From Bugula neritina (taxonomy: Eukaryota > Animalia > Bryozoa), in NCBI GenBank assembly GCA_964035545.1, contig OZ037772.1, positions 3,873,538 to 3,937,537 of the forward strand: a stretch of DNA of 64,000 bases, in the 5' to 3' direction. Below are positions 709 to 45,441 of the stretch, in pieces (positions within the stretch are counted from its first letter, which is position 1; each line of letters starts with the position of its first letter). The position numbers and the translations under genes were made by a program. Below the pieces are notes generated by a model. That model was not told the DNA's origin. It did not search any database and saw nothing but the letters and a program-made list of their open reading frames with translations.

Positions 709-2514
709 TTAATAATGCATTAAGCAATTTCTATGCAAGACCGAAATATTTAACTTACTCAAAACTTGTACATTTGAACTTTTAATTTCACTCAATTATT
801 GGGCCTCATGCATCATAAAACTTTTGAATGTGTTTTATATTCTTTCTTGAATGTTGTAGATAAACTGTAGTCTACATACCGTGGTGGAGCAGATATAAGA
901 ATTTATAATTGCATCAACCCGTTGCAGCAGCCATCTTACTGGAAATCTCAAACAAATCTCAGCATCGCCAAAGCCATATTTTAGCGAGCTGATAGAATAT
1001 CTCAGAGACATAACTTGTAAAGTACAGAAGTAAGAATTAAACACATAGGACAGTATATGTATAATCATGCCTTCCATCAAGGATATAGCTTTTTTAAAGA
1101 ATTTTTTGAGAATAATGATACAAATATTACCACTTCAGCTTAACAACTTATGACATAACGGTTACATTGAATATTATTTTCTAGATATCATATTCGTCTG
1201 TGTTTTAGTACTGCCAAGGATATCACTCAGCACTAAATGGACAAAATTGCTTCTTTTAATTAAGACACTATGCTGGAGAAAGGCCAATATATATGAATTG
1301 GATAAAGAAACTAGTAAATTATTCAGTGTTATAACTTATAATTAAACTTTGAACGAGCTTTGCTCTGATTGGTTTTTTCTGACTTATCGTAATATATATC
1401 TATATCTAGCCAGGGTTTTGTGCCTACATAGTAATGTACACTTCCTATGATAAGAGTAATTGAATGCAAATATAAATGAACATAATTTTTCTGATTTTAG
1501 TCTAGTTATGTTATAAGCATTAGATAACTTGTTTTTGAGACAGCGGGGTGAGAGCTTTGTAAAAAATTTAGCCTAATTAGAATTTCTGTAATAGATAAAC
1601 GTTACTAGCTCCTTAACAATTCAATTGAAGTTGAGTAAAAATATACATCAGATTACCAGTTCAAAGTAAAAGACTCTGAAGGCTAATAACTTACTACGAG
1701 CATTTTAAACAAATAACAAGAGACTAAATTCAAAACCAATTTATAATTATTCTTAGCATATGACAAGTATGAATGTTACAGCTGCTCTTATACAATGTAC
1801 TTGTACAGCTCTTACTCATTCTAGTATGTTTAACTGACATAGAATCCTTGTCTTTCTAGGGACTCCGCACATCGTTGGAGTGCAGAGGTCATCTCCAACA
1901 AAAGACTTTGAATTAAAGTGGATAAATAAAAGTAAGCGCTTGTAATGTTTTTCAGCTCTAATTAAAGTTCCCAAAATGTTATTGTTGGTAAGTTTCAGGC
2001 TCAAGAATAATCTTGTATTTTCTTATTAAAAAACAAAAAGAGAAAAAAAAAGAAAATAAAGCTACATGTACACAGGCCGATTTTTCATGAAAATCGGCCG
2101 ATAAACTGTTAGCGATTTTTTAGGATTTTTCAAAAATCCGCGATTTTTGCTTTTGGCCGATTTTTGAAGCGATTTTCAAAATTGAACATGTTCAATTTTT
2201 CGACAATTTTCTGTTGAACCAGCCAATCAAAAGGTGGCAGAAAATTATGACAGCAAGCAAAGTTAACACCATTGTTGAAATACAACCAGGAAGTAATTAA
2301 TACGTTGCTATCACTACGATACATCATATATAAAATACAAATAACTAAAATAACTATCAATAGCAGTAGTAGCAATAATAACAACGCATTGGTTGTTGTG
2401 TAACTTTGAGAAAGTTAGTTTCACTTTCGTGGAAATTCATTAAATTTTGCTTGCTTTTTTTTTAAAAAGACAAATATCATTACGGTATTCTTAACTTTTA
2501 CTCATGTAAAATAT

Positions 2515-3231
2515 TGTGGTAAAATTGTGTATAGTAACTAATACTTGTATCCCCCTTACTATTATTATCTTCATTCCCATGGAATGCGTGTTTTCTTAGA
2601 TATACATCATTACATAGCCATAGTATTGTAACAGCTAAGTGTTATGTTGGCAATGATAGGATTAGCTATTATTCCCAGCTACTTATTACTACCGACGTGA
2701 CTGGATTAGCTATTGTTTCTGACGGCTCACAGGAACACTTATATAATCAAGATAACCGGGATTTCCCTGCGAAGTTCGCTCGATTCGAGCGATTCTTTCA
2801 TTCTAGCCCTGCGAATCCCCTGCGATTCGAGCGAATTCCCTCGAATTCGCTCGGAACATTCTGGTGGGAATGTTTCCCAATGTATAAAAGGGAGCCCTCA
2901 ACACAGTAGAGTCAGTCTTCAGCCAGCAGCACAACAGGACACATCTCGGAGCTACCAAGCCAGGACAATAACACACTTAGTTAATTATCTTATACTTTGT
3001 TTACCAGTTTACTAGTAAGTTTTCCATACATGTAAGGAGTTGTCCTCCCTAACTGCTATTTTTGGATTTATATATATTATGGAGTAAATAAAGGGGATTG
3101 TGAGTATTACATTTCTTATTTATTGTGCATAAATACCCTCTTACAAAGAGTCACTGTGTTCCATCAGCTAACAACCCACACCAATAATTGCATGCAGCGA
3201 ATCATAACATTCTACGCATAAAATTATTACA
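2515..3231 (+). repeat. 5' LTR of element 1
   Basis: TGTGGTAAAA...TTATTACA; repeated at offset 7924 with only one substitution noticed. Confidence 0.97.
2883..2917 (+). promoter_or_regulatory. LTR core promoter: TATA box plus initiator
   Basis: TATAAAAG at 2883-2890 and TCAGTC initiator at 2912-2917; the initiator A (2914) is 31 nt after the TATA T, which is canonical spacing. Confidence 0.7.
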
Positions 3232-3232
3232 C

Positions 3233-3250
3233 TGGTGGCAGCGGTGGGAT
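3233..3250 (+). promoter_or_regulatory. Primer-binding site complementary to the tRNA-Leu 3' end
   Basis: TGGTGGCAGCGGTGGGAT is the reverse complement of ATCCCACCGCTGCCACCA, the 3' end of metazoan tRNA-Leu(AAG/TAG) plus CCA; 1 nt after the LTR. Confidence 0.92.
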
Positions 3251-3300
3251 AATCGTCTGGTACAGACTAAGCTGATGCTCCCCCACGGGGAGAGACAACA

Positions 3301-4401
3301 ATGGATCCATTGAGGCCAGCGCCAGAGCTCAGGCTTGATGATGAAGCAGCAGGAGGACGCTTCACCCTAGAGGCATTGATTCGGACTCTCTAGGAAGACA
3401 GGGCAGCTGCACAGGCTCCACCTGGTGACAGGTTCCGCCTTAAAGCGCCAGTCTTCGACGGTGAAGGAAATGTAGAACAATTTCTACAAGAATTCCGCGA
3501 GGTGGCCGTGGCCTCCCAGTGGCCGGCCCAGGTGGAATTACTGCAACTACGGTCCTGCCTGACAGGTCGAGCCAAACCCTATGCGGTAGGCCCGAATAGG
3601 GACCACATCATTGAGGCTCTGCGCGGCCGCTTCGGACTTACCGTCCGGGACGCGAGAGCCCGCCTACAAGGACTCCGACGAGACCCTAAGGTCTCACTAC
3701 AGGATCACGCCAACAAAGTGGAGCAGCTAGTCCAGGTAGCCTACGGTAACGTAGACCTGGAGTCACGCCAGGCCACCACCTTTGATATCTTCCTGCAATC
3801 GCTCAATAACCTGAGCCTGCAACGGTATCTCTTGGCAGCTGGGGTCGACACCATTGAGGCTGCTCTGGCCAGAGGAAAGGCGTACTACCAGATCGGCGGG
3901 AGTCAGGACTGTGACAGCAGTGCCCGACGAGTCGAGTCAGACTGGGGAGAGGCTGCCGAAGACACTCGGCCGAGGCCTCAAGTAGCGGCCGCCGCCACTA
4001 CACCCCCAACCCCACCCGAACTCTCCATGGTATTGGAGGTGGTGGACAAACTGCAAGGAGAGATCGCAACATTGCGACGGGACCAAACTACTAACAGACC
4101 GGATCGGTCATACGGTAGTCAGCCCAACAAGGACGCTCAGTTAGAGCCTAGGGTAGCAGCTACTGCACCTACCCCATCGACCTCAGCCGAAGTCTCCATG
4201 GTACTGGAGGTGGTGCGAGATCTACAGGCCGAAGTTAAGGCCCTGAGACGGGCCCAAACTACTAACCGGCCGAATCAGCCACGTAGTAGTCGCCCCGAAG
4301 GGTCTTCTCTCACGTGTTGGAAGTGTGGGACAACAGGTCATGTGCAACGAGACTGTCCCCGAGGACGCAGCGGTCCTTTAAACACCCAAGGCCTGCGGTA
4401 A
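3301..4401 (+). CDS. gag: Gag of element 1 (capsid-like region plus CCHC knuckle), with an in-frame TAG at 3391-3393
   Basis: ATG 3301 is in frame with ORF 3502-4401; FRLKAPVFDGEGNVEQFLQEF upstream of 3502 aligns with element 2 Gag YRLKAPTFTGEEEVEQFIQEF; zinc knuckle CWKCGTTGHVQRDC. Confidence 0.9.
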
Positions 4402-7400
4402 TCTCCGCCACCCGCAGGCCGAGTCTCCAGACTCACCCAAGGAGGGTTTACTCTGCACCCAGGGAGGCGCAGACGGAGCCCCCCTCATCTGAATGGCAAG
4501 CTCCCCGGAGAACTTGGAGGCCGAAAGGCCTGCCCGAACCTCCAGCTTGGCCACTCAACAACCGGTTCGCGGGGTTACCCGAGGAGGTTGTGGAGGAGGA
4601 TACTGATTCCGACCGGGATTTCCCCCGACTGCCCTCCAAACCTCAGAAAACCCCCGTGGTCCCTAGGACGTGTAAGAGGCCTACCGTCCAGACCCAAGAA
4701 GTGTCTCCCCCAGAGACAGACTACTCGAAGCACACCCAACCATACGGAAGCAGCTATTTCCTGCCCGGCAAGATTGCGGGCAAAGCTGCCACCTTCCTGT
4801 TGGACACCGGGTGCACCACAAACCTTCTGAGTAGGCGTCTCTTCGACACTCTTGGCGCTCGGGAGCGGGAAAGCCTCAAGCCGTATAATGGTGAGCACGG
4901 TACGTTGGCGGACGGATCGAGCATACCGTTTTACGGCCTCATCTCACTACCCAGAAGAGTTCGGGATCTCGTAATCCACGAGACCTTCATAGTGAGTCAC
5001 CTGAAGGAAGATGCTATCCTTGGCATGCCCTTCCTTGAGGAGCACCAATGCCACATGGACTTCAACAAGTCAGCAATAGTGGTGGATGGCAAGGAACTTA
5101 CCTGCGTGGATAAGTTCGGCAGGCCTCTGGTAGGAGGCGTACAGGTGGTCCGGGACAGCCTGATTCCCGGGCGCTCCCAGGCTACACTCCGGTGCAGGGT
5201 CAACTGCAAGGAGATCTCTGAGCTAGGGGTTGTGGAGGGCATGCACGGAAAGGTACAGTTGGCAAACAGCCTGAATTGGCTAGACTGCCGTGGAGAGTTC
5301 CTGGTGCAGTGCATCAACCCCTACGCGGAGCCGGTGAAGTTATCGGCTGGTTCACTGGTGGGCAGGTATCACTCGGTTCAGGAGACTGATGTTGGGCCCA
5401 CACTCGATGCGACGTCGGAGACACCGAGTCGCCCCCTGGAGTCTGGCATGGGACCAGTCCCAGAGCATGTGGCGGAGCTATACAAGGGAGCCTGTGGTGG
5501 TTGTGGAAGTAACGTGGAGCGCCAACGGATGGCCCAGTTACTTCGAGAGTACCACGATGTATTCAGCCAAGGAGACGAGGACATGGGGTTGACTAACGTA
5601 GTGCGGCACGAGATACCCCTAGTAACAGGGACTGCCCCCATACGACAACCCACTCGACGGCTGGGCCCGGAAAAGGAGAGGGAGGTTAGCCGGCAAGTCC
5701 AGGACTTGCTTGATCGGGACCTGATTGAGCCAGCCCACGGTGCGTGGAGCTCACCAGTCGTTCTGGTCAAAAAGAAGGATGGGAGCTGGAGATTCTGCGT
5801 TGATTACCGCAAGTTGAACAGCGTCACCATCCAGGATGCCTACCCTCTCCCCCGGATAGACGAGTCGCTAGATGCCCTCGCGGGAAGTAGATACTTCAGC
5901 ACGCTGGACCTACTGAGTGGATACTGGCAAGTACCCCTCAGTCCTGATGCACAGGACAAGGCCGCGTTCATCACCCGCGATGGCCTCTGGAAATGGAAGG
6001 TGTTGCCATTCGGGCTGACATCCGCCCCGGCCACCTTTCAGCGGCTCATGGAGCAGGTCCTCAGTGGGTTACACTGGAAGACGCTGCTAGTCTATCTGGA
6101 CGACGTCATTGTTATCTCGCCAGACTTTTCGACTCATGTCAGTCGTCTGCGCGAGGTCTTTGACCGTCTCCGGGCCGCCGGGCTAAAGCTTAAACCCTCG
6201 AAATGTGCCCTCCTGCAGCAGGAAGTCAAATATCTCGGACATGTGGTCAGCCGGGACGGCGTTGCCACCGACCCCGAGAAAGTACGGGCCGTACAAGACT
6301 GGACTGTTCCCCAAGATATCCATGAACTGAGAGCGTTCCTAGGACTGGTGGGATATTATCGGCAATATATCCCCGAATTCGCAGGTGTGGCACAGCCATT
6401 GAATCGGCTAACCGCCAAAGGAGTCCGGTGGCGTTGGACTCAGGAAGAGCAGCAGGCTTTTGATCATCTCAAGGCCCGGCTAGTGGAGGCACCCATCCTG
6501 GCCTACCCCGACCCGACCAAACAGTATATCTTGGATACAGATGCCAGCGACCACAGCATGGGGGCTGTGTTGTTCCAGGTACAAGGAGGTACCGAGGTAG
6601 TGGTGGCGTATTACAGCAAGGCCCTCTCCACCGCCGAAAGAAACTACTGCACGACCAGGAAGGAACTCCTAGCAGTAGTTAAGGCGGTGAAGCATTTCCG
6701 GCCATATCTGTATGGTAGAACGTTCAGATTACGAACCGACCATGCATCGTTGATATGGCTGTGCAAACGGGCCGAACCCTCCAGCCAGGTTGCCAGGTGG
6801 CTCGAAATACTTGCAGAATTCTCATATCGGATTGAACATCGCGCCGGCCGGAAGCATGGAAATGCTGATGGTCTGAGCCGTCGTCCAGAGAGAGACTGCA
6901 AGCAATGCCTCCATATAGAGAAGCGGGACGGGGGACCCGCCCGCTCGGAAGTGGAGACACAACTGAAGAAAACAGAAGCCTACAGGTGGGAACAAGGCCG
7001 ACTGCAACCCGATGTCCATTCAGATGCTGTCCAGGCCCTTCGGGTCAACCCCACCTTAGCCAGAAATGTCCAGGACTTGTGCCGATTACAGGAAACCCTG
7101 CCAGGGGTAGTGGGAGAGATATTCAGGGTCAAGAAGGAGGGGCGCCGGCCAGGTGAAGAGGAGCAGCGGCAGAAGGGCGTTGAATTCCAACAGTTCTGCC
7201 ACCGCTGGGACTCCCTCAAATTCAACTCGGACGGATTGCTAACCATCTCCTTGGCAGCAGACAGGCAACACCAGGAACGGGAGCGGGTTGTGTGCCCACA
7301 CCCCCTCCGGAGAGAGCTCATCTGGGAGACTCACAAGCAAGCCCATGCGGGGACCAGTAGAGTGATTCGGTGCCTACAGATGCGGTGGTACTGGCCTGGG

Positions 7401-8669
7401 ATGACAAGGGATGTGAGGCTACAGATCCGGCAATGTGAAATCTGCCAGGCGAGTAAGCATGGCCGTTCTACCGAGACCACGGGACGGCGCAGGCTGTACG
7501 CCGGTCGCCCGTGGCAGACAGTGGCAGTCGACTTGGTGGGTCCCATGCCGACGTCCGCTCGTGGAAACAACTGGATTCTGGTACTAACGGATCATTTTAC
7601 TAGGTGGGCAGATGCCTTGGCAATCCCGGACGCCTCCGCCCCGACGGTAGCCCGAGCTTTAGATCAGCACGTTTTCTGCTATTTCGGGCTACCGGAGCAG
7701 ATCCACACAGATCAAGGGGCACAGTTCCAATCACAGCTGATGAGGGACCTCTGTCGGGTATGGGGGGTCAACCAAAGTAGGACCACCCCCTACCACCCCC
7801 AAGGAAATGGCGTAGTGGAACGCAACAACAGGATGTTGGGGGACGCCCTGAGGAGTCTACTACTAGGGAAAAGCCAAGAAGAATGGGACGCCGTGCTACC
7901 CCAGATCATGCGTGCATATCGCAGTACTCCCCACTCTAGCACCCAGGAGACACCCAACTTCCTAATGCTAGGCCGGGAAACGCGGGTCCCGGATCATCTC
8001 ACGTACCACGTCCCCCTCCCAGAGGGACCTGTCCACGAATACGTGAGAGAGCTGGTTGATAGGATGAGGACGGCCCATGAGGTCCTAAGGGAAAAACAAT
8101 GGCAAGTGCGAGGGGAAGACTCGGACGAGCCCCCACTCTACCAGGCTGGCGATTGGGTATGGATGATTAGTTACAGGAGGAAGCGCGGACAGTCGGCTAA
8201 ATTACAGCCCAAGTTCGTGGGACCATACTGCATCATCGAAGTGCTACCCAATCACACGTACCGCGTAGAACGCTCCGGACAGATTTCCGTCCAAAGCGAG
8301 AAACGCTTAAAACCGTACTGGGCCAGCCCTGGGGCAGTAGGACAAGCACCACCGCTCCTGGAGCCAGCACGACGACCCACCGGGGGAGGAAGGGCGCCCC
8401 CCACCCGAGAGTGGGAACTTCCCTATAACATACCGGAGGGAAACCCCGAAGCACAAGAACCCCCCCCCACTGTGCAAGAGCCCCCCGAGCAACCAGCACC
8501 TCAGGCGCCCCCACCAGTAAGACCACCCCCCGCCATACCAGAGAGGTTAGACCCACCTACCCTGGAAGTAGGAGAGAGTAGAGCCACCAACCCTGGGGGA
8601 CAGGCCACTTTGCCAGACACAGAAGGCCTAAGGCGTAGCCAGAGGACTCGAAGACCTCCTGGGTACTGA
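4314..8669 (+). CDS. pol: Pol polyprotein of element 1 (protease, RT, RNase H, integrase)
   Basis: LLDTG protease; YLDD RT; DTDAS RNase H; HKQAH...CEIC zinc domain, VDLVGP/TDQG/VERNN DDE core and KFVGPY module of integrase. Probably entered by frameshift near 4383. Confidence 0.97.
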   Translation: MLEVWDNRSCATRLSPRTQRSFKHPRPAVISATRRPSLQTHPRRVYSAPREAQTEPPSSEWQAPRRTWRPKGLPEPPAWPLNNRFAGLPEEVVEEDTDSDRDFPRLPSKPQKTPVVPRTCKRPTVQTQEVSPPETDYSKHTQPYGSSYFLPGKIAGKAATFLLDTGCTTNLLSRRLFDTLGARERESLKPYNGEHGTLADGSSIPFYGLISLPRRVRDLVIHETFIVSHLKEDAILGMPFLEEHQCHMDFNKSAIVVDGKELTCVDKFGRPLVGGVQVVRDSLIPGRSQATLRCRVNCKEISELGVVEGMHGKVQLANSLNWLDCRGEFLVQCINPYAEPVKLSAGSLVGRYHSVQETDVGPTLDATSETPSRPLESGMGPVPEHVAELYKGACGGCGSNVERQRMAQLLREYHDVFSQGDEDMGLTNVVRHEIPLVTGTAPIRQPTRRLGPEKEREVSRQVQDLLDRDLIEPAHGAWSSPVVLVKKKDGSWRFCVDYRKLNSVTIQDAYPLPRIDESLDALAGSRYFSTLDLLSGYWQVPLSPDAQDKAAFITRDGLWKWKVLPFGLTSAPATFQRLMEQVLSGLHWKTLLVYLDDVIVISPDFSTHVSRLREVFDRLRAAGLKLKPSKCALLQQEVKYLGHVVSRDGVATDPEKVRAVQDWTVPQDIHELRAFLGLVGYYRQYIPEFAGVAQPLNRLTAKGVRWRWTQEEQQAFDHLKARLVEAPILAYPDPTKQYILDTDASDHSMGAVLFQVQGGTEVVVAYYSKALSTAERNYCTTRKELLAVVKAVKHFRPYLYGRTFRLRTDHASLIWLCKRAEPSSQVARWLEILAEFSYRIEHRAGRKHGNADGLSRRPERDCKQCLHIEKRDGGPARSEVETQLKKTEAYRWEQGRLQPDVHSDAVQALRVNPTLARNVQDLCRLQETLPGVVGEIFRVKKEGRRPGEEEQRQKGVEFQQFCHRWDSLKFNSDGLLTISLAADRQHQERERVVCPHPLRRELIWETHKQAHAGTSRVIRCLQMRWYWPGMTRDVRLQIRQCEICQASKHGRSTETTGRRRLYAGRPWQTVAVDLVGPMPTSARGNNWILVLTDHFTRWADALAIPDASAPTVARALDQHVFCYFGLPEQIHTDQGAQFQSQLMRDLCRVWGVNQSRTTPYHPQGNGVVERNNRMLGDALRSLLLGKSQEEWDAVLPQIMRAYRSTPHSSTQETPNFLMLGRETRVPDHLTYHVPLPEGPVHEYVRELVDRMRTAHEVLREKQWQVRGEDSDEPPLYQAGDWVWMISYRRKRGQSAKLQPKFVGPYCIIEVLPNHTYRVERSGQISVQSEKRLKPYWASPGAVGQAPPLLEPARRPTGGGRAPPTREWELPYNIPEGNPEAQEPPPTVQEPPEQPAPQAPPPVRPPPAIPERLDPPTLEVGESRATNPGGQATLPDTEGLRRSQRTRRPPGY
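4377..4420 (+). promoter_or_regulatory. -1 programmed ribosomal frameshift signal (gag to pol)
   Basis: T TTA AAC heptamer in gag phase, 6-nt spacer, 9-bp stem GGCCTGCGG (4390-4398)/CCGCAGGCC (4412-4420); pol is in the -1 frame. Confidence 0.85.
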
Positions 8670-8957
8670 GAGGAATATTACTGTGGCCAGATAGGGAAAG
8701 GATACCCTAGCTCGGAGGACGAAGGGCCCCCCTTGTATTACAACTATTCACCACCTAACCACACCACCAGGGAGGCTCGATATCGGCAGGAGATCACTTC
8801 GATGTTCCTCACCCAGGTCGGACAAAAACCCGATCCCGAAATTGGAAAAACCCAGGCGAGGGACTCTCGCGATAAACCACGAACGCATACTTTGTTCATT
8901 CCAATCGCAGCAAGCACACACGCCACACGGAATTTAATCTCTCGCCACCTAACAAAT

Positions 8958-10241
8958 ATGGATATTACACCCACTCACCTGAATGTTGAAGAAGAGTCCA
9001 GCACACACCCTGGTAAGTCCACTAGACTAGAATTACCTCCTATACCGGAGAATTGTCTAGGTGGTGATGACAGTAGAAACTCGAACTCTGATTCCCAGAG
9101 TAAGTTCGAGATGTGGAGAACTCACACTTGGAACTCTGAAGGGTCAGACTCAGAGTCACCCAACAAAGATTACCTACTTGACCAGGACATCCAGAGTGTC
9201 ACTCTACCCCCACCTCGGCAGCTCGCAGTATCGCGACGAGTGCTATACAAGGATATCACTAATAATGGAGTGAGTCAGCCATCACGAGTTGGAGATATCG
9301 GTCAGACTCGACCAGCTCAACTCTCTATTTCTGTTGTAGACACCGACAAAGTCGTAGAGCCTGCCTCTATGACTCTCACCTCATTCGGAAGATCCTCCGA
9401 AATCGCGGCACCCCAGGAGCAAGTAATGGAGGGAGATACAGAGACCCCTGCCACTGTCGTCGATATTGGACTAGATGAAGGGGAGGAACAGTGTATCCTG
9501 TCCCCATCCGGGACTACAGACCCCCCTCAAGGACTAGAGGGAGCTGGAGAGCTGGGACTACCACGTGTTTTCAGCACCCGGTCTCACTGGACCAGCACCA
9601 AGACGCGGATCCTGATAGCTGAGGCTTGTGGGGAGCCTAGCAACACGAAGTGCCCCACATGTGGGCGAAGCTTTACCTCGCACAGGCGACTACGGATACA
9701 CGTCCAACAACATTACGTCAACTCATTCTGTCCGTGTGGGGAGTTTAGCTTCCAGCGGGACTACGTGCTCAAGCAGCAACGTATCGGCCGCTGCCACACG
9801 GGCAGAATTTTTGATGTGGATGCGGACAATTATCTAGAGTTCAGGGACCTGATTCTCCCCCACATCAGCGATCCCAAGAAGAGGGAGCTGTTGTCCCAAG
9901 GGTTCCCGGCCTGTCGACCCACTAGTCAGACTCAACCGCCAGAGGACTCCCCAAGTTGTGAGTTGCCACCCACCCAGCCTCTCCGGGTAGTGGTAACTCG
10001 AGCCGAAGCTACTGCAGAAGGAGACCGCTGGACGCCACGAGAAACGGCCCGAACTAGAAGAGAACGGCGTCGGCAGGGCGCACCGAGGCCGCGTAGTATC
10101 ACTCCCTATACTACTAGGCACACACACCGTGGACCCCCGGAGAGTCTGGAGGATATATATCGTGGCCTGGACCGGATCTCTGAGGAACTAGGACGCATAC
10201 GACGCAGGCTGCAGGACCTTGAACAGCCCGCTCGACCCTAA
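8958..10241 (+). CDS. Accessory ORF3 of element 1: C2H2 zinc finger/Cys cluster/Arg-rich/coiled-coil protein; predicted exons 8958-9012 and 9340-10241 (318 aa); the unspliced frame is also open from 8670
   Basis: CPTCGRSFTSHRRLRIHVQQH, FCPCG...GRC, VDADNYLEF, RETARTRRERRRQ, LDRISEELGRIRRRLQDL; homologous to ORF3 of element 2; donor G|GTAAGT at 9013 and acceptor CTCTCTATTTCTGTTGTAG| at 9339, both phase 1. Confidence 0.8.
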   Translation: MDITPTHLNVEEESSTHPGKSTRLELPPIPENCLGGDDSRNSNSDSQSKFEMWRTHTWNSEGSDSESPNKDYLLDQDIQSVTLPPPRQLAVSRRVLYKDITNNGVSQPSRVGDIGQTRPAQLSISVVDTDKVVEPASMTLTSFGRSSEIAAPQEQVMEGDTETPATVVDIGLDEGEEQCILSPSGTTDPPQGLEGAGELGLPRVFSTRSHWTSTKTRILIAEACGEPSNTKCPTCGRSFTSHRRLRIHVQQHYVNSFCPCGEFSFQRDYVLKQQRIGRCHTGRIFDVDADNYLEFRDLILPHISDPKKRELLSQGFPACRPTSQTQPPEDSPSCELPPTQPLRVVVTRAEATAEGDRWTPRETARTRRERRRQGAPRPRSITPYTTRHTHRGPPESLEDIYRGLDRISEELGRIRRRLQDLEQPARP

Positions 10242-10427
10242 GGGTGACACTTTTCTTTATGTAAATATATATTCTTGTGTGTATTAATTCATTATCCCTT
10301 AACATTTTCTATCTTATATATTTTTGTTTGTGTGACTAGATTAGCCATTCCAGAACTCCCTTACATGTATTTTCTTTTATTATTATATTTTTTTTAATTA
10401 TATCAGAAAGGGGTTGTACTTTCTGAT

Positions 10428-10436
10428 GGAGGGGAG
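10428..10436 (+). promoter_or_regulatory. Polypurine tract of element 1
   Basis: GGAGGGGAG, 2 nt before the 3' LTR. Confidence 0.8.
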
Positions 10437-10438
10437 TG

Positions 10439-11155
10439 TGTGGTAAAATTGTGTATAGTAACTAATACTTGTATCCCCCTTACTATTATTATCTTCATTC
10501 CCATGGAATGCGTGTTTTCTTAGATATACATCATTACATAGCCATAGTATTGTAACAGCTAAGTGTTATGTTGGCAATGATAGGATTAGCTATTATTCCC
10601 AGCTACTTATTACTACCGACGTGACTGGATTAGCTATTGTTTCTGACGGCTCACAGGAACACTTATATAATCAAGATAACCGGGATTTCCCTGCGAAGTT
10701 CGCTCGATTCGAGCGATTCTTTTATTCTAGCCCTGCGAATCCCCTGCGATTCGAGCGAATTCCCTCGAATTCGCTCGGAACATTCTGGTGGGAATGTTTC
10801 CCAATGTATAAAAGGGAGCCCTCAACACAGTAGAGTCAGTCTTCAGCCAGCAGCACAACAGGACACATCTCGGAGCTACCAAGCCAGGACAATAACACAC
10901 TTAGTTAATTATCTTATACTTTGTTTACCAGTTTACTAGTAAGTTTTCCATACATGTAAGGAGTTGTCCTCCCTAACTGCTATTTTTGGATTTATATATA
11001 TTATGGAGTAAATAAAGGGGATTGTGAGTATTACATTTCTTATTTATTGTGCATAAATACCCTCTTACAAAGAGTCACTGTGTTCCATCAGCTAACAACC
11101 CACACCAATAATTGCATGCAGCGAATCATAACATTCTACGCATAAAATTATTACA
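10439..11155 (+). repeat. 3' LTR of element 1
   Basis: Direct repeat of 2515-3231, followed by TSD ATAT. Confidence 0.97.
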
Positions 11156-12022
11156 ATATAATTTATAACTTGTAGTTTATAGGTTGTTGTTTTTATATTC
11201 ATGTAACCAGTATTAGTATGAGATTGAGCATCTCAACTTTACGATTTAAATATTTTCTTAGAGAGAAGATTTGCCGTGCTCTACAGTTTTCATTACCTGT
11301 ATAAACAATAACGCTTGAGTTAAACTTCTAGTTTTAAACTAAATAGCTTAAACAAATTGATAGGTGATGTTAATCGTGTAGCTTAGTGATTTATGGATAA
11401 TTATAGATAATAAATATGGTTAAATAGAAAGCTACCAAGCCAGCTATTTGCTTTTTGATTTAATACTAAAATTAGTGATAAGTTTTTACGCAATTTTTAA
11501 ATGCAGCAAGCTGCTAACAAATTATACGCAGCCAATTTACTTTATTCATTTTTCATTTATTAGAGTATCAGAATAAGCATATTGCTTTTTTAAATAGAAC
11601 ACTGGTATTATTCTTAGCTTTCATTTATAATATAATTTATAACTTGTTGTTTTACTTTTTATATTCATGTAACCAGTATCAGCATCTTAACTTTACAGTT
11701 TAATTTTGTGTTGACAGTTTCTAGCCATTTCACTTGTGAAAATAACGTATATAAAATGCCGATGTATGTTTACTATGCTAATGCACATGCAACTAATCTT
11801 GACCTTTGCGTATGAACCTAAAAGAAAGTTAGATAGACCGAGAACCATCCGCCAGTAAAACAAAAGCAGGAAAATAACGCGGGAAATAAAATCGCCTAGA
11901 AAATCGGCTGATTTTTCAGTCAGCAATAGCGAAATCGACAAGCACAAAATCGGCTGAAAAAATCGACCTGTGTACATGTAGCTTAAGGGTCCTCAGTCGC
12001 AAAAACCAAAAGATAGCTTTTC

Positions 12023-12645
12023 CAGAGGTGTGGACATATTCAAAAGTTTCAAATTTGGGGAAGGAGAATCTATAGAGGTTCACAAGGATGTCTTAGAAAA
12101 ATTTGACAACTTTTGTAAAAAGACCTCCAACAAAATAATCAAGAGACATCAACTGCTATCAATAGATGAGTATGTCACCAACTTACATTGTTTATGAGCT
12201 TGATAGAGATAAAACTTCACTCAATACCAAAGACATATTTTCAAATATTGTTTTTTTTGTGTTTGCAGGTAAAAGACCATTTCTATGTGATGTCTGTGGC
12301 AAGGCTTTCAAGCGCAGAAAAATCTGATAAAGAGGATAAAACAAAAATGGCCATTCTAATGCGGACCATTAGACCCAGAGGTGTAGACATATTCAAAAGT
12401 TTCAAATTTGGGGAAGGAGAATCTAAAGATGTTTACAAGGATGTCCTATATATAGGAAAATTTGACAACTTTTGGAAAAAGACCTCCAACAAAATAATCA
12501 AAACACATCAACTGCTATCGACAAAACAAGAATGCTTATCAATAGATGAGTATGTCACCAACAGCTTACATGGGATCGCCAGAAAATGTGACCTTGGTGA
12601 CATGTATGATGTCTTTTTTATGCAGGCCTTTCTTCTTGGCATATA
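12023..12645 (+). pseudogene. Two partial tandem copies of a degenerate retrotransposon gag (copies of 14638-15400)
   Basis: VDIFKSFKFGEGES...KFDNF...IDEYVT segments at about 12023-12187 and 12316-12645 are near-identical to about 14720-15045. Confidence 0.7.
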
Positions 12646-12653
12646 TAATTTTG

Positions 12654-12955
12654 TATGCTCACATGGAGCTATAGAAGGAAATGTCAGCTAGAAGAGGAAG
12701 GAAATGGAGGTCAAGGCCAGCAACCCAATATCAAGGTCAACTGGAAGAAAGTAGTTTTAGGTCATGACTTGTCATTCTCAATTATGGCGGCTAGTTTGAG
12801 CACACTTTTGGACTAGAAGAGGAAGGAGACAAGGAGACCACAGAACTCTCTGGGGAGGGAGGTAAAACACGCTTCAGCTACAAAGCAAGAGTTGAAAAGA
12901 GAAATAATTGGAAAAAGTTGAAATTTTACTCCATTTGATCCAAAATTAACAGATA
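12654..12955. repeat. ~300 bp dispersed direct repeat, second copy at about 23909-24210
   Basis: TATGCTCACATGGA(G/A)CTATAGAAGGAAATGTCAGCTAGAAGAGGAAGG... shared with high identity. Confidence 0.85.
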
Positions 12956-13169
12956 TCAATAAGAGTTGCAATCACATGTTCTCCTGTAGTTTTCAGAACA
13001 AAAGGATGCTTTTGTTGAGCAGAGTCTTGAGCTTGGTGACTTGACAAAATTGCTTTGATCTTAGATAAGTCACAAAAGCATTTATTTGTAGTTAATCTGA
13101 ATACTAATATAAGACAGTTATAAACTAGATCTTAGTTTTAGGTCATATATAGTATGAAATTTTACAGAC

Positions 13170-14306
13170 ATGAAGAAACAACTAAAGGAGGTGCTGGATG
13201 GGCAGAAAAAACTGATGGCTATAATCACTGATAGCCATAGTGGCAAAGACAATATAACTGAGCAGCTGGAGGAGCCGCTAAAAACAATACAAGAGTTTGA
13301 ATCTCTTGAAGAACTTCTCCAATCCTCAAGAGAAAAACGTTCTGCTCTGGTACATAGTATGCTACTATATAATATAGATTGTAAAGCTAGTTTAAAAACT
13401 TTTGGTGTATAACATGCAATATATAACATCCTGGCGTAGTTGATATTAGAATACAATTTCTAGTGAACTGTAGATTTTCAAGCTATAAAGTGTGTTTCTC
13501 TTATGGAATGTTTCTCATTAAAGTGTTAGAAAAAATATTTGCCCCACTGCAATAACACATTGAATGTATTCATGTAAATTCATGCTATGAAATATAGGTG
13601 CATTAATGTTGTAGACAAAGTTTCTTTTCCAACTGGGAGGAAAAAACTGCGCAGATATGGTGAAAAGAGCCATGAGAAGAATTGGCACCAATGGGCTGTG
13701 GAGCCAATTCAGTATGAAGGGCAAAGCCCATAAACAACATAAAAAGCTGTCTCTAAAAATATATTGAAATAAAATCTGTATCAAAACTTATCAAATCTCT
13801 GGGGCTGCATCAGCAGTTAAAATAGTTGTTGAGTTGTTGAGTTTAGAATAATTGCTCATCTAAAAATTTACTGCATTCACTAAGTTTTACTTTCTAATTA
13901 TATTTCAGAAGCTCTGCTGAAAAGTAAAAATAATAAAGAAATAGATATAGAGATTGAAGTATCGCTATTTTTGCGGCAGTGCCCTTATCAACTGGGAGGG
14001 GATAAGTATAAAAAGACAAGTTTGCAAGATGAGGTTTTTGTTCTGTTGTTTTTCATTTTTCTTAACAAAATAAAGTAGCCATTACAGAGATCGGTGTAGG
14101 ATCGCAAACCTTTCACCAACGTTATATGAAAACCATCTACACAACGTTATGCAACACAACGTTTATGGAACGTTGGTGAAACTTTTTGAGATAAACGTTT
14201 GTTTTAAACGTTGTATACAGTACAAAAATGTGTCGACATTTAAACGTTTATTAAACATTTTGCCCAACGTTTATACAACGTCATATCAATGTAAATTGTT
14301 AGTGGG
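13170..14306 (+). mobile_element. Right part of a probable CACTA/EnSpm-type DNA transposon with a spliced DUF4806-like accessory gene remnant
   Basis: Exon-like pieces PLKTIQEFESLEELL...KRSAL and FQLGGKNCADMVKRAMRRIGTNGLWSQFSMKG resemble DUF4806 proteins; dense AACGTT subterminal repeats 14118-14280; terminus TGTTAGTGGG. Confidence 0.5.
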
Positions 14307-14309
14307 GTG

Positions 14310-14500
14310 ATTGCTAAAGAACTATGGGGATATTTTGATGGCTCTATAACTGAACCTGAAAAATCAGCTAGTGCTATACTAGACTGACTATACAAAGATA
14401 TTAAGCAAGGCTATGTCAATTATTGTACTCGCGATAATTTGCTATACCTCATAACCAGCTGCACAGAACCAAAGCAAGCATGGGGCACTTTACAAAAACA
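14310..14500 (+). pseudogene. Ty1/Copia gag N-terminal fragment
   Basis: Manual translation IAKELWGYFDGSITEP...KAMSIIVLAI...LYLITSCTEPKQAWGTLQKH, with frameshifts and a stop, is typical of Copia Gag. Confidence 0.6.
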
Positions 14501-14637
14501 CAGAACCAGAAAGCAAGTCAGAAAACTGACAGTGCCTTCCTCCTATCAAAAAGGGAGACAACCAACTACTAACCAAAAAAATACTTAAACGGACACTGGA
14601 TCTAAATTTGTCAAAATAAAAAATAGTTGTTGTAAAC

Positions 14638-15400
14638 ATGGCAACTGCACAAGATGGTGCAGAGTTGTCCACCCAATGGTCCTGCTTCAAGGAAGAGTTC
14701 AACTATTATCTGATAGCCTCAGAAAAATCTGATAAAGAGGATAAAATAAAAATGGCCGTTCTAATGCGGACCATTAGACCGAGAAGTGTGGACATATTCA
14801 AAAGTTTCAAGTTTGGGGAAGGAGAATCTAAAGAGGTTTACAAGGATGTCCTATATATAGAAAAATTTGACAACTTTTGTAAAAAGACCTCCAACAAAAT
14901 AATTAAAAGACATCAACTGCTATCGACAAAACAGGAATACTTATTAATAGATGAGTATGTCACCAACTTACATAGGATTGCCAGAAAATGTGACCTTGGT
15001 GACATGTATGATGATTTTTTTATGCAGGCCTTTCTTCTTGGCATCAACGACACAAACAACTTTAGAAAAAATTGTTTGAGGAGTCAGAAAAGATAGACCT
15101 CAAAAAAGCAATTAAAAAGTGCAAAGTGGCTGAGAGCTCTCAGAGTAATATGAAGACTATTAAAGCGGAAGGAGAATCAATTCATACACTTGGTCTCAAG
15201 GCCACTAAAGCAAACAAAAGTGCCAAACTGTACTTACGCACAACTGACAAGGAAGCGAATAATCCTGCCAAGTCTAACTGTGGAAACTGTGGAAACTGTG
15301 GCAACTCTCATCCTCCTGAAAATGCTTACGGTAAACAGTGTAGTAACTGCAAGAAATTCAACCACTTCAGAGCAGTCTGCAAAAGAAGGAAGATGCATGT
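14638..15400 (+). pseudogene. Frameshifted Gypsy-type gag with zinc knuckle (unrelated to elements 1 and 2)
   Basis: ORFs 14638-15096 and 15072-15440 join by a frameshift; QWSCFKEEFNYYLIA...IDEYVTNLHRIARKC and CSNCKKFNHFRAVC; no pol follows. Confidence 0.75.
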
Positions 15401-18400
15401 AAATACAATTTTATATCTGAGTGTTATTCCGTGCATTTAATCCAAAAATGTTGATAAGAAAAACTGAAGGCTACTGGGTGTGTGTTACAAAAATGTTATA
15501 TAAAGCCTGAGATCATGCTTTAAAACACTTTAAATATTGCATAATATATATTAAATCAAATAAGTACAATATCAAAATATATATCGATACTATAATTTAT
15601 TATATGTATAAATATACATGAAGTGCTAGCATAATGTAGCTAATATTTTATATTATGATAAGCCAAAAGTGATCATTATAATTTTAAACAATGTATATGT
15701 TCGCAGTCTAAATACAATAAATAGATAGCTGTTGTCCATATTTTTAATGCAAGCTGATTAAAAACTGCCAGTGCAGAGTGTGACAGCCAATACTGGTTGC
15801 TGTATCAGCTGATAATTGTTGCTCTCGTCAGCACGGGTGCTGTTTGGCACGGATGCCTATGTATTATGATTCACTTAACAAAGGCTGAATGGATTGAGGA
15901 CACAGATGCAGGCCACAACTCTATTTTTTGTTTATTGCCAACAGTATATTTTCTAAGTTAGACTTAGACTCGAACTCATACTGATACTCATACTGTAACC
16001 TATAACCATGAAAATTACAAACTTCATGTTAACTCAACATTAATTACACAGCTGACAAAACATTTAGTTAATGAAGTTCAAAGCAAAAGATAATATAATA
16101 CTTGATACTCGCGATTAAGTATAGATTGCCTGCATCTTTAGCAGGAGGAAAATTGAGCTACACTGACTCATTGAATAAAAACAGCCAGCAAATAGCTTTC
16201 ATTTCACAATGGTTTTTGGAAAGCTGCCAAAACTCCTGCAACACGGAGATCTATATATGGCCTTCAAAGCTATTAAAATATATTTCATAGAGTTCCAGTC
16301 ACCAATAAAACAAAGTTTGAGTATAGTAGGCAATATAATTACTGAACAGATATACTTTAAATATATATTAACGTAGGAGGTCTAACATTATTCTTAAAAA
16401 CAAAGTAACAAAAGTAACAAGCTAAAGTTGCTTTCGAAACAAAATAATGATTTACAGGTATACATTATTAAGTTAAAATGTTTGGTATTAGATTACATCA
16501 TATAGTTTTTTTGTAAGCATTATGCATGATTGTCTCCCAATCAACAAGAAGTCATAGTATGCAGTTTGATGATTTTAATTATTTAAAAAAGATAATTGTA
16601 TTTTTAGTAAACTGTTACACGAAACAAAATTGCACATTTCCTCATAAATTTAACTACAGTTAAAACAACATTATTATTTTTTGGTAAGACTGGAAAAAAT
16701 TAAAATAATACTCAACCTAAGAAGATACATACCTTTTGCTGTCTCCAACTTGCTGCTCAACTTTTCAGGCATTTTTGCTAAGAATTTAGTTATATAGTGT
16801 TTAAAAGTACTATGGTTTCCCAGCAAGCTTTACCTTGCTGAAATGTAACTTTCCAGGGTCAGAATAGCAGGTTTGACAAAATTTCTTATTTATATACTGC
16901 TATAATAGTAACAAAGAAAATTATCTGTTCCTACAATTACTTCTACTAAGGTCTAGAGGGAGAGTGCATCCCTATAATTATGCAAAAGATAATAGACCCC
17001 CTGTAGTTCTGGGCCAAGTTTCTTTTCATCTTCATAATAATCAGGAAGCTTAAGTAAGCTTAAAACTTTTTAATTTACTAAAAATAGCTGCCAAGAGTTG
17101 TACTTTAGTTTGAACCTTATAAAAAAATCCTGGAATTAGCCAACTTCAAAAGCACTGTCATAATTATAAATTTTTTTGAAGAAGTTTACCCTCAAATACT
17201 GTATAATAAAGAAAAATCTTCAAGCTTTCTTGGTTTTGTGTTATCTCAGTACATGCAGAGTTTATAGTCTCTATGAGAGAGCTTTTTCAACTGACTGAGC
17301 ATATAATAGCTAAAAATTTTGTCCGCTGTCATGAACTTTATGATAGTAAAGGAGATGTTAAGAAATGCTTGCAGCTTACATTTGCTACTAAATATTAGAC
17401 CCTGTAGCATATACGATACACCAAGTTTCATTCACAATAAATCTAATGGGAATCAAGAGATAATAAATTCAAACTTATTAACACATAATTATTATTGAAA
17501 ACTATCTATACATATCTTACTCTTTTTTTGTGTAGGTATAGTCAAATTATATGACTAGCAAGAAATTCAGATTTTGATATTCACCCATTGCGTGAACAAT
17601 ATTTTTTCTAACTGAATTATTTTACTTGAAAAATTTCCAAAACAGGGAAACCAATTCAGCAACTAGTTCTAAAGTTTGAAAAAGGCATGTAGCACCAGTG
17701 CTACACTGGTCGTCTGTCTCTAAGAGTAACAATTCAGTTTAATTCAGGCAACTCCCCTCCATATAAACTCCAAACAATATATTCTACTTAAACTGCTATA
17801 TTTAAAAACATTAGAAAATGAAGATCATACTTTTTATAAATAGTATGTATAGTAACTTTCATAAAAAAAGCAAGCGCTTTGCTGGGAATATTTTGTTGCA
17901 TGCAGTTAATAGAAACTGGGGGGAACCCTGAGTATGTCTCGTGTAAACACAGTTGGAGCAAATACACCAGTTAACTGTAAAATGGCTAAATATTTGCAGC
18001 TATAATAACACCTCTAAACAAATCAACTAAAAAGTAGACATGAATGTGGACATTGTACCTATTTGGTTATAATTAGTATAATAGCTAAGCTGTGAATTTG
18101 CTCTTATCCTTACTAATTGACAGACAAAGTAAGAATTTAAAAGTAAGAATTTAAAGAATAAAATCTTTTAATAACCTCATACCCCAATACATTAGGCCAG
18201 GAACTACGACAAATTAAAACAAATGATGGGTGTCTTTAATTTGCCTATAACTTTTTTGCGGCTACTTACATTTTTCTTTCATATATTGAAGAAAACACAA
18301 CCATTTAGTTTAGAATTAGCAAAGGCTAGCAACTGTAAGACATGTAGTATTAATTAAGTAGCTAACCTATTACACAGGAAACTTGACAAATAAAATTTTC

Positions 18401-36851: not shown

Positions 36852-37946
36852 CTGTAGATGTGAAGAAAACATGCTACCTAAGATTTATACCCTCAATTAT
36901 AACTTTTCAAAAGAAAAATAAAAATTGTAGAAACTTTGGAAGTTAGATGTGTTTTCAAAATGTGAAGTAAAAAACACAATCCAAAAAGAATATAACCAAT
37001 TACATGACTTGTTACATATTTAGATGCTGAACACTTTTTAAATGAAGCAGATAATCATAAGCGAGCTGAAAAGCATATTACAGTGGCTGGTTAAAAACAC
37101 ACATACTCCCACTTTTCTCATAAACTGTAAATACGCCCACACTCACATTGGTACCTGAACTCATACTGAAAGCGTTGCTCATAGCTGGTTCATATTGATA
37201 CTGATATCATAAAGTTAATAATGATATTCATCCTCAATAGTAGAGTTAGTAAATGGTATTGATTCACCCACAATGACAATTACTTGCAAAAGTTATTGAA
37301 TTATTTATTTATTGACTTGGTGAGTTATTTAATTTTATCAATTATAATGTGTATCATTCAAATGTGAATGTTTGTTTGTTTGTTTGTTTTCTTTATTTCC
37401 ATCAAAACAAAAAACAAAAGGACAAAAAAATACAAATATACAACAGTAACACAAAAAGAGCTAAATTCAATTTATATATAATATCAATCGAAGTCAAGAT
37501 GGGGGCCCATGTGCTCAGTAGCATAGCTATTCAAGGAATGGGGCCCAAGTGGCAGTTGAAAAAATAGTTGAAAAAATGTTGAAATGATCTAGTCAATTTG
37601 ATTACCTCATACTAATTTCGATTCATCGCAATTGTCGCAATAATTTTGCTATAGGGAATCTTATTAAATTTGACAATTGACATTCAGTTTCACGATGCTC
37701 ATTCAGTGATTGACAGCTAGTCTTACATTGACCTTCAAGCGTAAAGCAACAGAATCTAACAGTAAGTGTAACTATAAGATTAAGTATATTTAGTTTACTA
37801 TCAAGTATTAACATTACCACGTAAAATTAAAATCTGTCAGTGTCTATAAAATTAAATTCCATAAAGCAAAATTACAAACCATTTTTATTCATGCTCTAAC
37901 TTTGAAACCAGTGATACAAAAATAGTGTCATATCATTATTTGATAT

Positions 37947-38252
37947 TGTTATAATTTTCAGATTTAGGGTTGATATGCTATCCAGAGAGTCTATTTATCT
38001 AGTATAGAACTGCACCAGGCTAAGTCGAGTGAACGAGTATATTTTATACACAATTATACATTATAAAAACACGATACATTATTCCCAACAAGTTACACAT
38101 CTAATCTATTTCACACTCTAGCTTCGACTGAGTTAGCAGCGGGAAACTACAATTGCTGCTAACTATCAACTACGCTAATTGGCTATCCATTGTTCCGGGT
38201 CAATTACGCGACCCTACATGTTGTGCTGCTGGTAGTTCCACGAACCACCACA
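37947..38252 (-). repeat. 3' LTR of element 2
   Basis: Direct repeat of 45136-45441 with 9 substitutions counted; preceded on the minus strand by G-rich PPT-like GGTGGGGGCGG. Confidence 0.96.
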
Positions 38253-38532
38253 CCGCCCCCACCAGCAGAAAGCCATTTTTCTGATATATATATATAAAAA
38301 ACATTCAATAGTAATTGCATACATCAGTGGACAAAAATAATACATAATATACAGGAAGAGACATAATAATACACAGAGTCGTTATAACGATCTGTTGCAT
38401 ACAATTGGCCAGCTGTAGATAGACGAGGAATACTAGCTAGCTGTGGTATTAGACAAGGAATAACCTGTCTAGCAGTTAAGCATTTGCACGAGTTTGGTTC
38501 TTCACCAAATGTGGAGTATTCTGGGTAGCATA

Positions 38533-39609
38533 CTAGAGTCCTTGTTGGGCACGCCGGTGCTTGGCTTGGCATGTACGCAGTTTCCGTTTCATACGGCATA
38601 CGGATCCCTTCAGCTGGAAGAGTCCTGTGGTAGTGTTGAGTAGATCTGGCGCCAGCTGGGTGAACTCTTCTTGTAATCGTAGGAGGCGTTCTTCTACTGT
38701 AGCTAGTCGTACTGGGTCTGGGGACGGTGTCCGTCTGCGGCGTAATGGTGGACTGGGGGACCTGGTCCGTCTCTTCGCCGGGGTAGGGGAGATCTCTCCT
38801 TCTTCTGGATATGTAGTTTCCTCGGGGGTGTAGGTAATTGGAGGGCGGTCAGACACCAACGGGGATTGTTGGCGGGCGTTGTCTAACACACTTTGGAACC
38901 CCGAGGATAGAACGGCTAGTAGCATGGCCTTCTTTACCAGAGGTCGTATATATGTGAGGAACTCCGGGTACAGCTTAGCGTCGACCACATAGTTTTCTCC
39001 AGGGAAACAGCCCGCCGCTCTGTGTCTGGTGACGGGGTAGGGATACACATCATTGTACCCGCAGGGGCAGAAGGTCAGTAGGAGATGGGCATTGACGTGT
39101 AGTTTAAGGGAGCGGTGAGAGGCGCAATCTTCACCACAGATCTGGCATCTCGTCCGTCCTCTGGACCCCCAGGCTGTTTCTATTTCTTCTTCGGTTTGTG
39201 GAGACACCCACCGCCAACGGCGGCGTAGTGGCTCAGGCCGGTCACCACTAGCATAGTCCTCCGGATACGGAGCGGGAAGTGTTCTATCCCGTACCCTGGT
39301 TGTAGCGGGTCGAGTGTAATCTGAAAAAGTTTCAACAGTGTTAGTACATTACACTGCTGTGTTGTCAGCTTGAACAGCTTGGCAACTCCTAATTCAGTTA
39401 CCTCGTAGAGATTAATGATAGTGAATAGTCAGATAGAACCGTATTGCAATGAGATTATAAAAATCTCTAAGTCAAACTAAGTTCTTACTACGGTATTTCA
39501 CTAACCTATCTCCAGCTCGATTGACTCAGTGAGTCAGAGCTGAGCGATGCAATCTAGTTTCGTATTAAGATATAGTTAACTCACCCCACGATCTGTTGTC
39601 GTAAGACAT
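38533..39609 (-). CDS. Accessory ORF3 of element 2, spliced: exons 39609-39585 and 39320-38533 (270 aa, MSYDNRSWDYTRP...)
   Basis: CQICGEDCASHRSLKLHVNAH, FCPCG...H...GC, VDAKLYPEF, KRRTRSPSPPLRRRR, coiled coil LATVEERLLRLQEEF. Exon 2 has no in-frame ATG before the finger. Donor G|GTGAGT (39584), branch TACTAAC (39346-39340), acceptor TTTTTCAG| (39321); phase 1 on both sides. Confidence 0.8.
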
Positions 39610-39633
39610 ACTGAATATGTGAAATGGTTTGAA

Positions 39634-45104: not shown

Positions 45105-45116
45105 CTTGGATGCACC

Positions 45117-45134
45117 ATCCCACCGCTGCCACCA
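45117..45134 (-). promoter_or_regulatory. Primer-binding site (tRNA-Leu)
   Basis: Minus strand TGGTGGCAGCGGTGGGAT, identical to the element 1 PBS. Confidence 0.92.
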
Positions 45135-45135
45135 C

Positions 45136-45441
45136 TGTTATAATTTTCAGTTTTAGGGTTGATGTACTATCCAGAGAGTCTATTTGTCTATTATAGAACT
45201 GCACCAGGCTAAGTCGAGTGAACGAGTATATTTTATACACAACTATACATTATAAAAACACGATACATTATTTCAAACAAGTTACACATCTAATCTATTT
45301 CACACTCTAGCTTCGACTGAGTTAGCAGCGGGAAACTACAATTGCTGCTAACTATCAACTACGCTAATTGGCTATCCATTGTTCCGGGTCAATTACGCGA
45401 CCCTACACGTTGTGCTGCTGGTAGTTCCACGAACCACCACA
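45136..45441 (-). repeat. 5' LTR of element 2
   Basis: 306-bp repeat adjacent to the PBS. Confidence 0.96.

Follow-up and report, generated by a model that had tools for sequence, protein, structure and literature searches.

Extra genes carried by LTR retrotransposons are the raw material of retroviral complexity, and few non-env examples from animals have been characterized. HIV-type Rev and HTLV-type Rex are made from fully spliced early mRNA and bind a structured response element in unspliced RNA; foamy-virus Tas binds the LTR or an internal promoter. The env of the errantivirus type encodes a protein with a signal peptide and a membrane anchor. Additions of another kind are found as C-terminal extensions of Ty3/Gypsy integrases, among them the chromodomain of chromoviruses and the targeting domains of the Tf1 and Ty5 type.

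A Rev-like factor in a 'complex' Gypsy element has its precedent in CERV, from the Ty3/Gypsy element Cer1 of C. elegans; CERV is encoded by a five-exon spliced mRNA that has exons in common with gag, features a putative C4 loop and is not known to be fused to Pol (PMC10309623). In the bdelloid rotifer elements Juno and Vesta the non-env ORF3s encode a GDSL esterase and a DEDDy exonuclease, and Ty3/Gypsy-like elements repeatedly gain non-env third ORFs that are also found in other genomic contexts (PMC5408684). Both non-env third ORFs (CERV, rotifer ORF3s) and integrase C-terminal modules are already known.

The ORF3 described here is a post-integrase module of a bryozoan Ty3/Gypsy clade, and it occurs in three lineage-dependent layouts: as a separate ORF, as a pol-frame ORF that follows one stop, and as the uninterrupted C-terminus of Pol. 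The module represents a large family under selection, whose zinc-finger fold is predicted with confidence but unclassified, in an under-studied phylum for which repeat libraries are scarce (PMC13326412). No description of the domain family, its fused and free states or its host paralogues was found in the searchable literature. Its three states and its sharing with host genes raise the questions of how an accessory gene separates from or joins Pol, and of whether elements and host exchange DNA-binding modules.

Compared by description, ORF3 resembles Rev, Rex and Tas in its Arg-rich tract, in a helix with the potential to multimerise and in being neither structural nor env, and differs from them in that it is built on zinc fingers, can be part of Pol and, in element 1, is 2-4 times larger. 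Like the integrase C-terminal extensions, it lies directly after integrase, in some lineages shares the frame of Pol, and is a small module plausibly binding chromatin or DNA; unlike them, it is far longer, carries a coiled coil and in most copies has its own Met or stands as a separate ORF, and Pfam shows no chromodomain in it. In-frame coding after integrase is seen in P0251, P0252 and P0254, is interrupted by one stop in element 1 and does not occur in element 2. Features in common with CERV are a Cys-rich putative zinc site, a leucine-zipper-like helix, a basic nuclear signal, lineage restriction and fast evolution (PMC10309623); by description, the C2H2-type double finger and the Pol-fused forms set ORF3 apart from CERV with its putative C4 loop. 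The rotifer ORF3s are enzymes, whereas the bryozoan ORF3 is a zinc-finger/coiled-coil protein.

Two Ty3/Gypsy elements in the window

The window, the whole 64,000-nucleotide stretch of Bugula neritina DNA analysed here, is A+T-rich (~30% G+C overall) and contains two islands of ~57% G+C, each of which is one Ty3/Gypsy LTR retrotransposon; tRNA and Rfam scans of the window found nothing. Element 1 (2515 to 11155, 8641 bp) lies with all its features on the forward strand and is flanked by an ATAT target duplication. Its 717-bp 5' LTR (2515 to 3231), with TG...CA ends, is identical to the 3' LTR (10439 to 11155) at 716 of 717 positions; an 18-nt primer-binding site is located at 3233 to 3250 and a polypurine tract (10425 to 10436) adjoins the 3' LTR. 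The gag gene (3301 to 4401) encodes a CCHC knuckle and contains one in-frame stop, counted in the frame read from the ATG that aligns with the element 2 gag start. The pol gene (4314 to 8669), which is in the -1 frame relative to gag and shares 88 nt with it, encodes protease, reverse transcriptase, RNase H, integrase and an SH3-like domain (PR-RT-RNase H-IN-SH3-like) with zero internal stops. The hallmarks of the Metaviridae are present, namely direct LTRs with TG...CA ends, a short target duplication, a primer-binding site and a polypurine tract, and the CCHC knuckle of gag and the PR-RT-RNase H-IN order of pol, assigned by Pfam, are those of Ty3/Gypsy elements.

Element 2 (37947 to 45441, 7495 bp) is a related Ty3/Gypsy element on the reverse strand, with a pol 67-72% identical to that of element 1. 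Its 306-bp 5' LTR (45136 to 45441) matches the 3' LTR (37947 to 38252) at 297 of 306 positions, and its flanks read ATAT and ATAG. Both gag (44145 to 45104), which has an ATG, and pol (39634 to 44262; 1542 aa) are open. The LTRs of the two elements cannot be aligned, as had been claimed from the sequence, and the 18-nt primer-binding site, the same in both, is their sole common part. No more than two or three insertion sites can be seen (ATAT; ATAT/ATAG), and in a genome of 70% A+T they are uninformative on targeting.

The ORF3 core, its predicted fold and its relatives

In element 1, ORF3 (8958 to 10241, forward strand) encodes 427 aa plus a stop. The ORF3 open frame of element 2 (38533 to 39348, reverse strand) comprises 271 codons plus a stop and has no ATG ahead of the core, unlike most E2-type relatives, in which a Met stands ~20 residues ahead of it. 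The two products show 37/109 identities (34%; BLASTP E 9e-18) over a core of ~110 aa, and the conserved stretch begins at the Trp (9588 in element 1, 39210 in element 2) from which the sequence-only reading had traced a common core. The same reading had described the products as lacking a signal peptide and a membrane segment, and this is borne out: neither protein has a hydrophobic N-terminus or signal peptide, and no membrane segment was found in either, the maximal Kyte-Doolittle mean over 19 residues being 0.67 in element 1 and 1.36 in element 2. An errantivirus-type env, with its signal peptide and membrane anchor, is rejected for ORF3 on these grounds.

AlphaFold2 models of both ORF3 proteins were built with 150 relatives. 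The element 2 model has a mean pLDDT of 86, with 94-98 over residues 1-115, which contain the core (38863 to 39207, reverse strand), and one long helix at residues 165-223 (38539 to 38715). In the element 1 model, residues 1-200 (8958 to 9557) are disordered with pLDDT mostly <50, the core at residues 201-325 (9558 to 9935) reaches pLDDT 95-98 and a helix spans residues 397-422. The N-region of element 1 is acidic and contains short conserved motifs. The structured core, predicted with confidence, amounts to ~115-125 aa and consists of an N-terminal helix, two consecutive beta-beta-alpha zinc fingers and three short helices packed as a small bundle. Finger 1 is a beta-hairpin plus helix with the pattern C-x2-C-x12-H-x3-H, and finger 2 is a hairpin plus helix with the pattern C-x-C...H...C. 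The eight candidate zinc ligands are retained in 84-98% of up to 120 relatives, those of the C2H2 finger in 92-94%, and the latter finger has the PF00096 spacing together with the predicted beta-beta-alpha fold.

The Arg-rich tracts and C-terminal heptad helices noticed earlier are both located where they had been placed. The tract of element 1 lies at 10038 to 10076, and that of element 2 (38731 to 38775, reverse strand) is accompanied by Ser-Pro repeats. In the amphipathic C-terminal helix of element 1 (10146 to 10223) the heptad pattern is complete, with 100% of the a/d positions hydrophobic in the best heptad register; the figure for the helix of element 2 is 81%.

Searches of domain and structure libraries yielded no known relative of the module. 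The Pfam C2H2 family (PF00096) scores 17.3 bits on it, below the gathering threshold of 25.2, a weak sub-threshold match of this kind is obtained in just 3/41 relatives, and no other Pfam family covers the module. A profile search of PDB sequences returned generic single-finger matches (SALL3/4) only, and Foldseek found nothing with E <= 0.001 in the PDB or in BFVD, a collection of viral structures. The best partial matches in the PDB are tandem C2H2 fingers on DNA (E 0.6-1.4); as these fold matches are non-significant (E >0.6), they do not tell DNA from RNA binding. No kinship with Rev, Rex or Tas, the regulators named in the sequence-only reading, emerged from Pfam, PDB sequences, PDB folds searched with Foldseek or the viral fold library, and Cer1 CERV was likewise absent from the matches.

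A word-indexed search recovered 9 element 1-type and 97 element 2-type relatives, which come from JGI, Logan and ENA data, and a profile search of 1.84 billion representatives recovered 309 clusters at E <= 0.001. One JGI protein is 99% identical to the ORF3 product of element 1, and B. neritina proteins occur in the same JGI and Logan data, in keeping with the origin of the window. Among 20 family matches whose names were checked, the names that appeared all belong to 'uncharacterized' or 'hypothetical' proteins from two bryozoans, Watersipora subatra and Bugula neritina, with no named nematode protein among the 20. A scan of metagenome contigs for extra loci gave 176 pattern matches, of which zero were confirmed.

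It had been asked whether such genes lie between integrase and the 3' LTR, or whether they are for the most part host genes without a link to pol. In each element-type locus with flanking sequence (L001-L007, L009-L011, L015 and L016), as in the window, the module is 3' of integrase, which answers the second question in the negative. The module is retained across pol lineages that are 51-72% identical. The core is kept under strong purifying selection in the element lineages: by the Nei-Gojobori method, a simple one applied to single pairs with the called ORFs unaltered, core dN/dS is 0.067 for element 1 against P0003 (dS 0.94) and 0.048 for element 2 against P0011, where dS is near saturation. 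In the former pair the values are 0.36 for the N-region, 0.42 for the linker and 0.27 for the tail; in more distant pairs the silent sites are saturated. These core values support the earlier proposal of selection on an element-encoded protein and refute a dN/dS of about 1.

Coding layouts and proposed role of the module

A separate ORF with its own Met is found in most E2-type copies, and 97 E2-type clusters encode a free protein. On three ENA contigs, integrase, core and coiled coil are encoded in one continuous ORF, with products of 1460 aa (P0251), 1168 aa (P0252) and 1181 aa (P0254). P0251, from ENA contig L014, is free of stops and comprises RNase H, integrase, an SH3-like domain and then the pol-tail motif, past which follow a linker of ~380 residues, the core (residues 1077-1170), Pro-rich repeats, an Arg tract and the terminal coiled coil. 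The same fused arrangement is seen in P0252 and its cluster mate P0254, whose lineage shows identities of 57% in integrase and 31-39% in the core. Pol of the fused forms is 51-62% identical to Pol of the window's elements, indicating that pol and the module were associated before elements 1 and 2 diverged. The module is not in every case the separate third gene proposed from the sequence, as on these three contigs it is the C-terminus of Pol.

The layout of element 1 is intermediate in kind. Its ORF3 has the frame of pol and is separated from it by no stop other than pol's own, and the interval from that stop to the ORF3 Met (8670 to 8957, forward strand) is open for 96 codons in the pol/ORF3 frame, with 3 stops in each of the remaining two frames. 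In element 2, the linker from pol to the core (39208 to 39633, reverse strand; 44% GC) contains six stops in the pol/ORF3 frame. It is possible, though we would not favour it, that element 1 has no separate third gene at all and that its module is a Pol tail, truncated by a nonsense mutation or reached by low-level readthrough. The shared frame, the single stop and the 96 open codons ahead of the Met speak for this, as do the fully fused relatives and the stop that element 1 also has in gag. A further point in its favour comes from L015, a sister copy of element 1 with 96.7% nucleotide identity, in which a sense codon stands where element 1 has the pol stop, and in which the open frame of ORF3 extends over 629 codons and includes the pol-tail motif; this region of L015 also contains indels, however, and the pol of L015 stops earlier and in another frame. 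The pol-tail motif likewise falls inside the ORF3 open frame in L009. Against a Pol tail, the Met at 8958 is conserved in 5/5 E1-type relatives that cover the column, the open frames of the E1-type P0003, P0007 and P0008 begin just 26-59 codons before the start and lack the pol tail, and no stable RNA structure was found after the element 1 pol stop (z = +1.0).

Three mechanisms were considered for the element 1 stops and the pol/ORF3 junction, and each was rejected. A structured readthrough signal at the pol stop is rejected on the z-score just given, a programmed frameshift between pol and ORF3 on the frame offsets of L015 and L009, which run in opposite directions, and G-to-A editing as the origin of the stops on the 100 substitutions that separate element 1 from L015, which show no such bias. 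A separate gene is also favoured by L006 and L007, two copies of one family whose linkers differ in length by an amount not divisible by three. Across loci, pol and ORF3 share a frame at ~6/10, a proportion that is not significantly above chance and comes from non-independent loci.

We propose that ORF3 is an integrase-linked, putative nucleic-acid-binding accessory module whose most likely role is DNA tethering or targeting, and we assign this reading a probability of roughly 0.4. The product would oligomerise, act in the nucleus, bind nucleic acid and cooperate with integrase or the pre-integration complex, and it would most likely tether the complex to DNA or chromatin, with target choice or nuclear delivery as the result. 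Chromodomains and further C-terminal extensions of integrase have this role in other Ty3/Gypsy lineages. The fingers may provide the contact to nucleic acid, the Arg tract may serve nuclear import or contact the backbone, and the C-terminal helix may mediate multimerisation or the docking of a partner. Tethering at integration is preferred over an early regulatory role because the module can be made as a Pol tail, from unspliced RNA; delivered with the polyprotein, such a module fits a role in integration better than one in early regulation. Points that we count for tethering are the position 3' of integrase, the in-frame fusions, the layout of element 1, the pol-tail motif inside the ORF3 open frame of L015 and L009, the selection on the core, the zinc ligands, the fold and the heptad helix. 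On the other side, most copies are free and the linker of element 2 is rich in stops, so that a link to integrase would have to be made there by protein contact. The shared frame at just ~6/10 loci, the non-significant fold matches and the uninformative insertion sites also count against it. Separately, the element 1 stop may itself be a mutation, in view of the sense codon in L015 and the stop in gag, and this too weighs against tethering.

In a more specific form of this proposal, which we consider unlikely, the zinc-finger/coiled-coil module, integrase-fused or free, would read DNA sequence and steer the choice of insertion site. If this were true, the module would parallel, in nature, the zinc-finger-integrase fusions that have been engineered, and the host paralogues would be its source or its domesticated copies.

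A Rev/CERV-like regulator is the weaker rival to tethering. ORF3 would then be a free nuclear protein, translated from a spliced subgenomic mRNA, that binds element RNA or the LTR through its fingers and Arg tract, multimerises through its helix and promotes the export of unspliced RNA or transcription from the LTR. Such a protein would be in keeping with the Arg-rich tract next to a candidate oligomerisation helix and with the separate ORF and conserved Met seen in both element types; a spliced leader exon could supply the ATG missing ahead of the element 2 core, and an activation region could lie in the acidic, disordered N-region, where short motifs are conserved. By analogy, a Rev/CERV-like factor is plausible for the free forms. 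As an account of the module it is nonetheless doubtful, given that no similarity to retroviral regulators was found in Pfam, by PDB sequence, by PDB fold or in the viral fold library, and that translation of the Pol-fused forms would require the very unspliced RNA whose release is ascribed to such a factor. The Pol-fused arrangement sits uneasily with an early regulator or an export factor, and tethering remains our preferred role.

Host paralogues of the module

The core is also found outside the elements. At L008 (B. neritina VXIV02000093.1), two adjacent multi-exon genes of host-like, AT-rich composition encode KAF6040923, with two cores, and KAF6040922, with one, and no similarity to pol was found within 26 kb around them. 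Together with W. subatra XP_067944745, these host paralogues have the same core as the element ORF3s at ~30% identity, and KAF6040922 resembles the element proteins further in ending with a coiled-coil-like helix. They differ from element ORF3s in an extra conserved N-terminal region, in their introns, in a host-like A+T content and in having no pol nearby. Between the host, E1-type, E2-type and fused groups, core identity is ~30% throughout and accordingly does not decide the direction of transfer.

The host genes bring two further explanations into view. In one, ORF3 would be a mimic or antagonist of a host factor, pairing with the paralogues through its coiled coil or competing with them for DNA sites, and would thereby let the element escape or redirect a host pathway such as silencing. 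The presence of core and C-terminal coiled coil in KAF6040922, KAF6040923 and XP_067944745, the AT-rich, multi-exon, pol-free setting of the host genes and the equal distances of ~30% between host and element cores are consistent with such an interplay; it leaves the Pol-fused forms unexplained, and we regard it as quite unlikely. In the other, ORF3 would be a passenger, a host zinc-finger exon captured by chance and with no role for the element. Host paralogues exist, as this would require, but it is contradicted by the selection on the core (dN/dS 0.05-0.07 between element copies), by the retention of the module across the divergent pol lineages and by the hundreds of clusters in the family, and it is very improbable. 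The sequence-only reading had likewise set selection against a host capture: the purifying selection holds, whereas the separation from host genes is weakened by pol-unlinked host genes that carry the core and the coiled coil. The N-terminal region specific to the host proteins is conserved between KAF6040922 and W. subatra XP_067944745.

The element 1 copy and its insertion site

The gag gene of element 1 (window 3301-4401) is interrupted by a single in-frame stop, despite LTRs that are identical at 716 of 717 positions. The copy was probably defective before it inserted, or derived from a defective template; comparison with its sister copy, L015, revealed no G-to-A bias in element 1. The two Gypsy elements share an identical primer-binding site of 18 nt (window 3233-3250 in element 1 and 45118-45135 in element 2), though their LTRs cannot be aligned. 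Element 1 is flanked by the four-base duplication ATAT/ATAT (window 2511-2514 and 11156-11159), and element 2 by ATAT/ATAG (window 37943-37946 and 45442-45445); with only two such ATAT-type sites in a genome of 70% A+T, nothing has been demonstrated so far.

Just downstream of element 1 lies a 74-nt direct repeat (window 12022-12095 and 12375-12448), the units of which are 93% identical and 353 nt apart. The ORF at window 14638-15093 weakly matches Retrotrans_gag (E 0.001) and is probably the leftover of a different retroelement.

An old copy with an open ORF3

The relative at L002:4185-11375 is an old element copy, in which LTR likeness is only 85% and pol is spread across all three frames by at least nine frame changes. 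Its ORF3, the non-env module 3' of integrase, is still open over 330 codons and identical in four samples, which could reflect post-mortem selection on a dead element, or chance. Beyond the 3' LTR, just downstream of ORF3, a second gene of exactly 330 residues is called in both L002 and L003 (L002:11639-12631 and L003:3752-4744); it shows no similarity to the conserved double-zinc-finger core of ORF3. The host flank at L002:16682-17250 contains a long repeat array with a period of 9-12 nt.

The core in host genes and annotated proteins

The core is also present in two neighbouring host genes of B. neritina, KAF6040923 and KAF6040922 (L008:2362-4972 and 10001-16169), one of which carries two cores in tandem. 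Both genes possess a common conserved N-terminal region that occurs in W. subatra as well. W. subatra XP_067940964 (P0107), annotated as an 'uncharacterized protein', features two cores of the type found in element 1, mutually 69% identical, and ends in a coiled coil; the entry may represent a domesticated gene, or element copies merged into one model.
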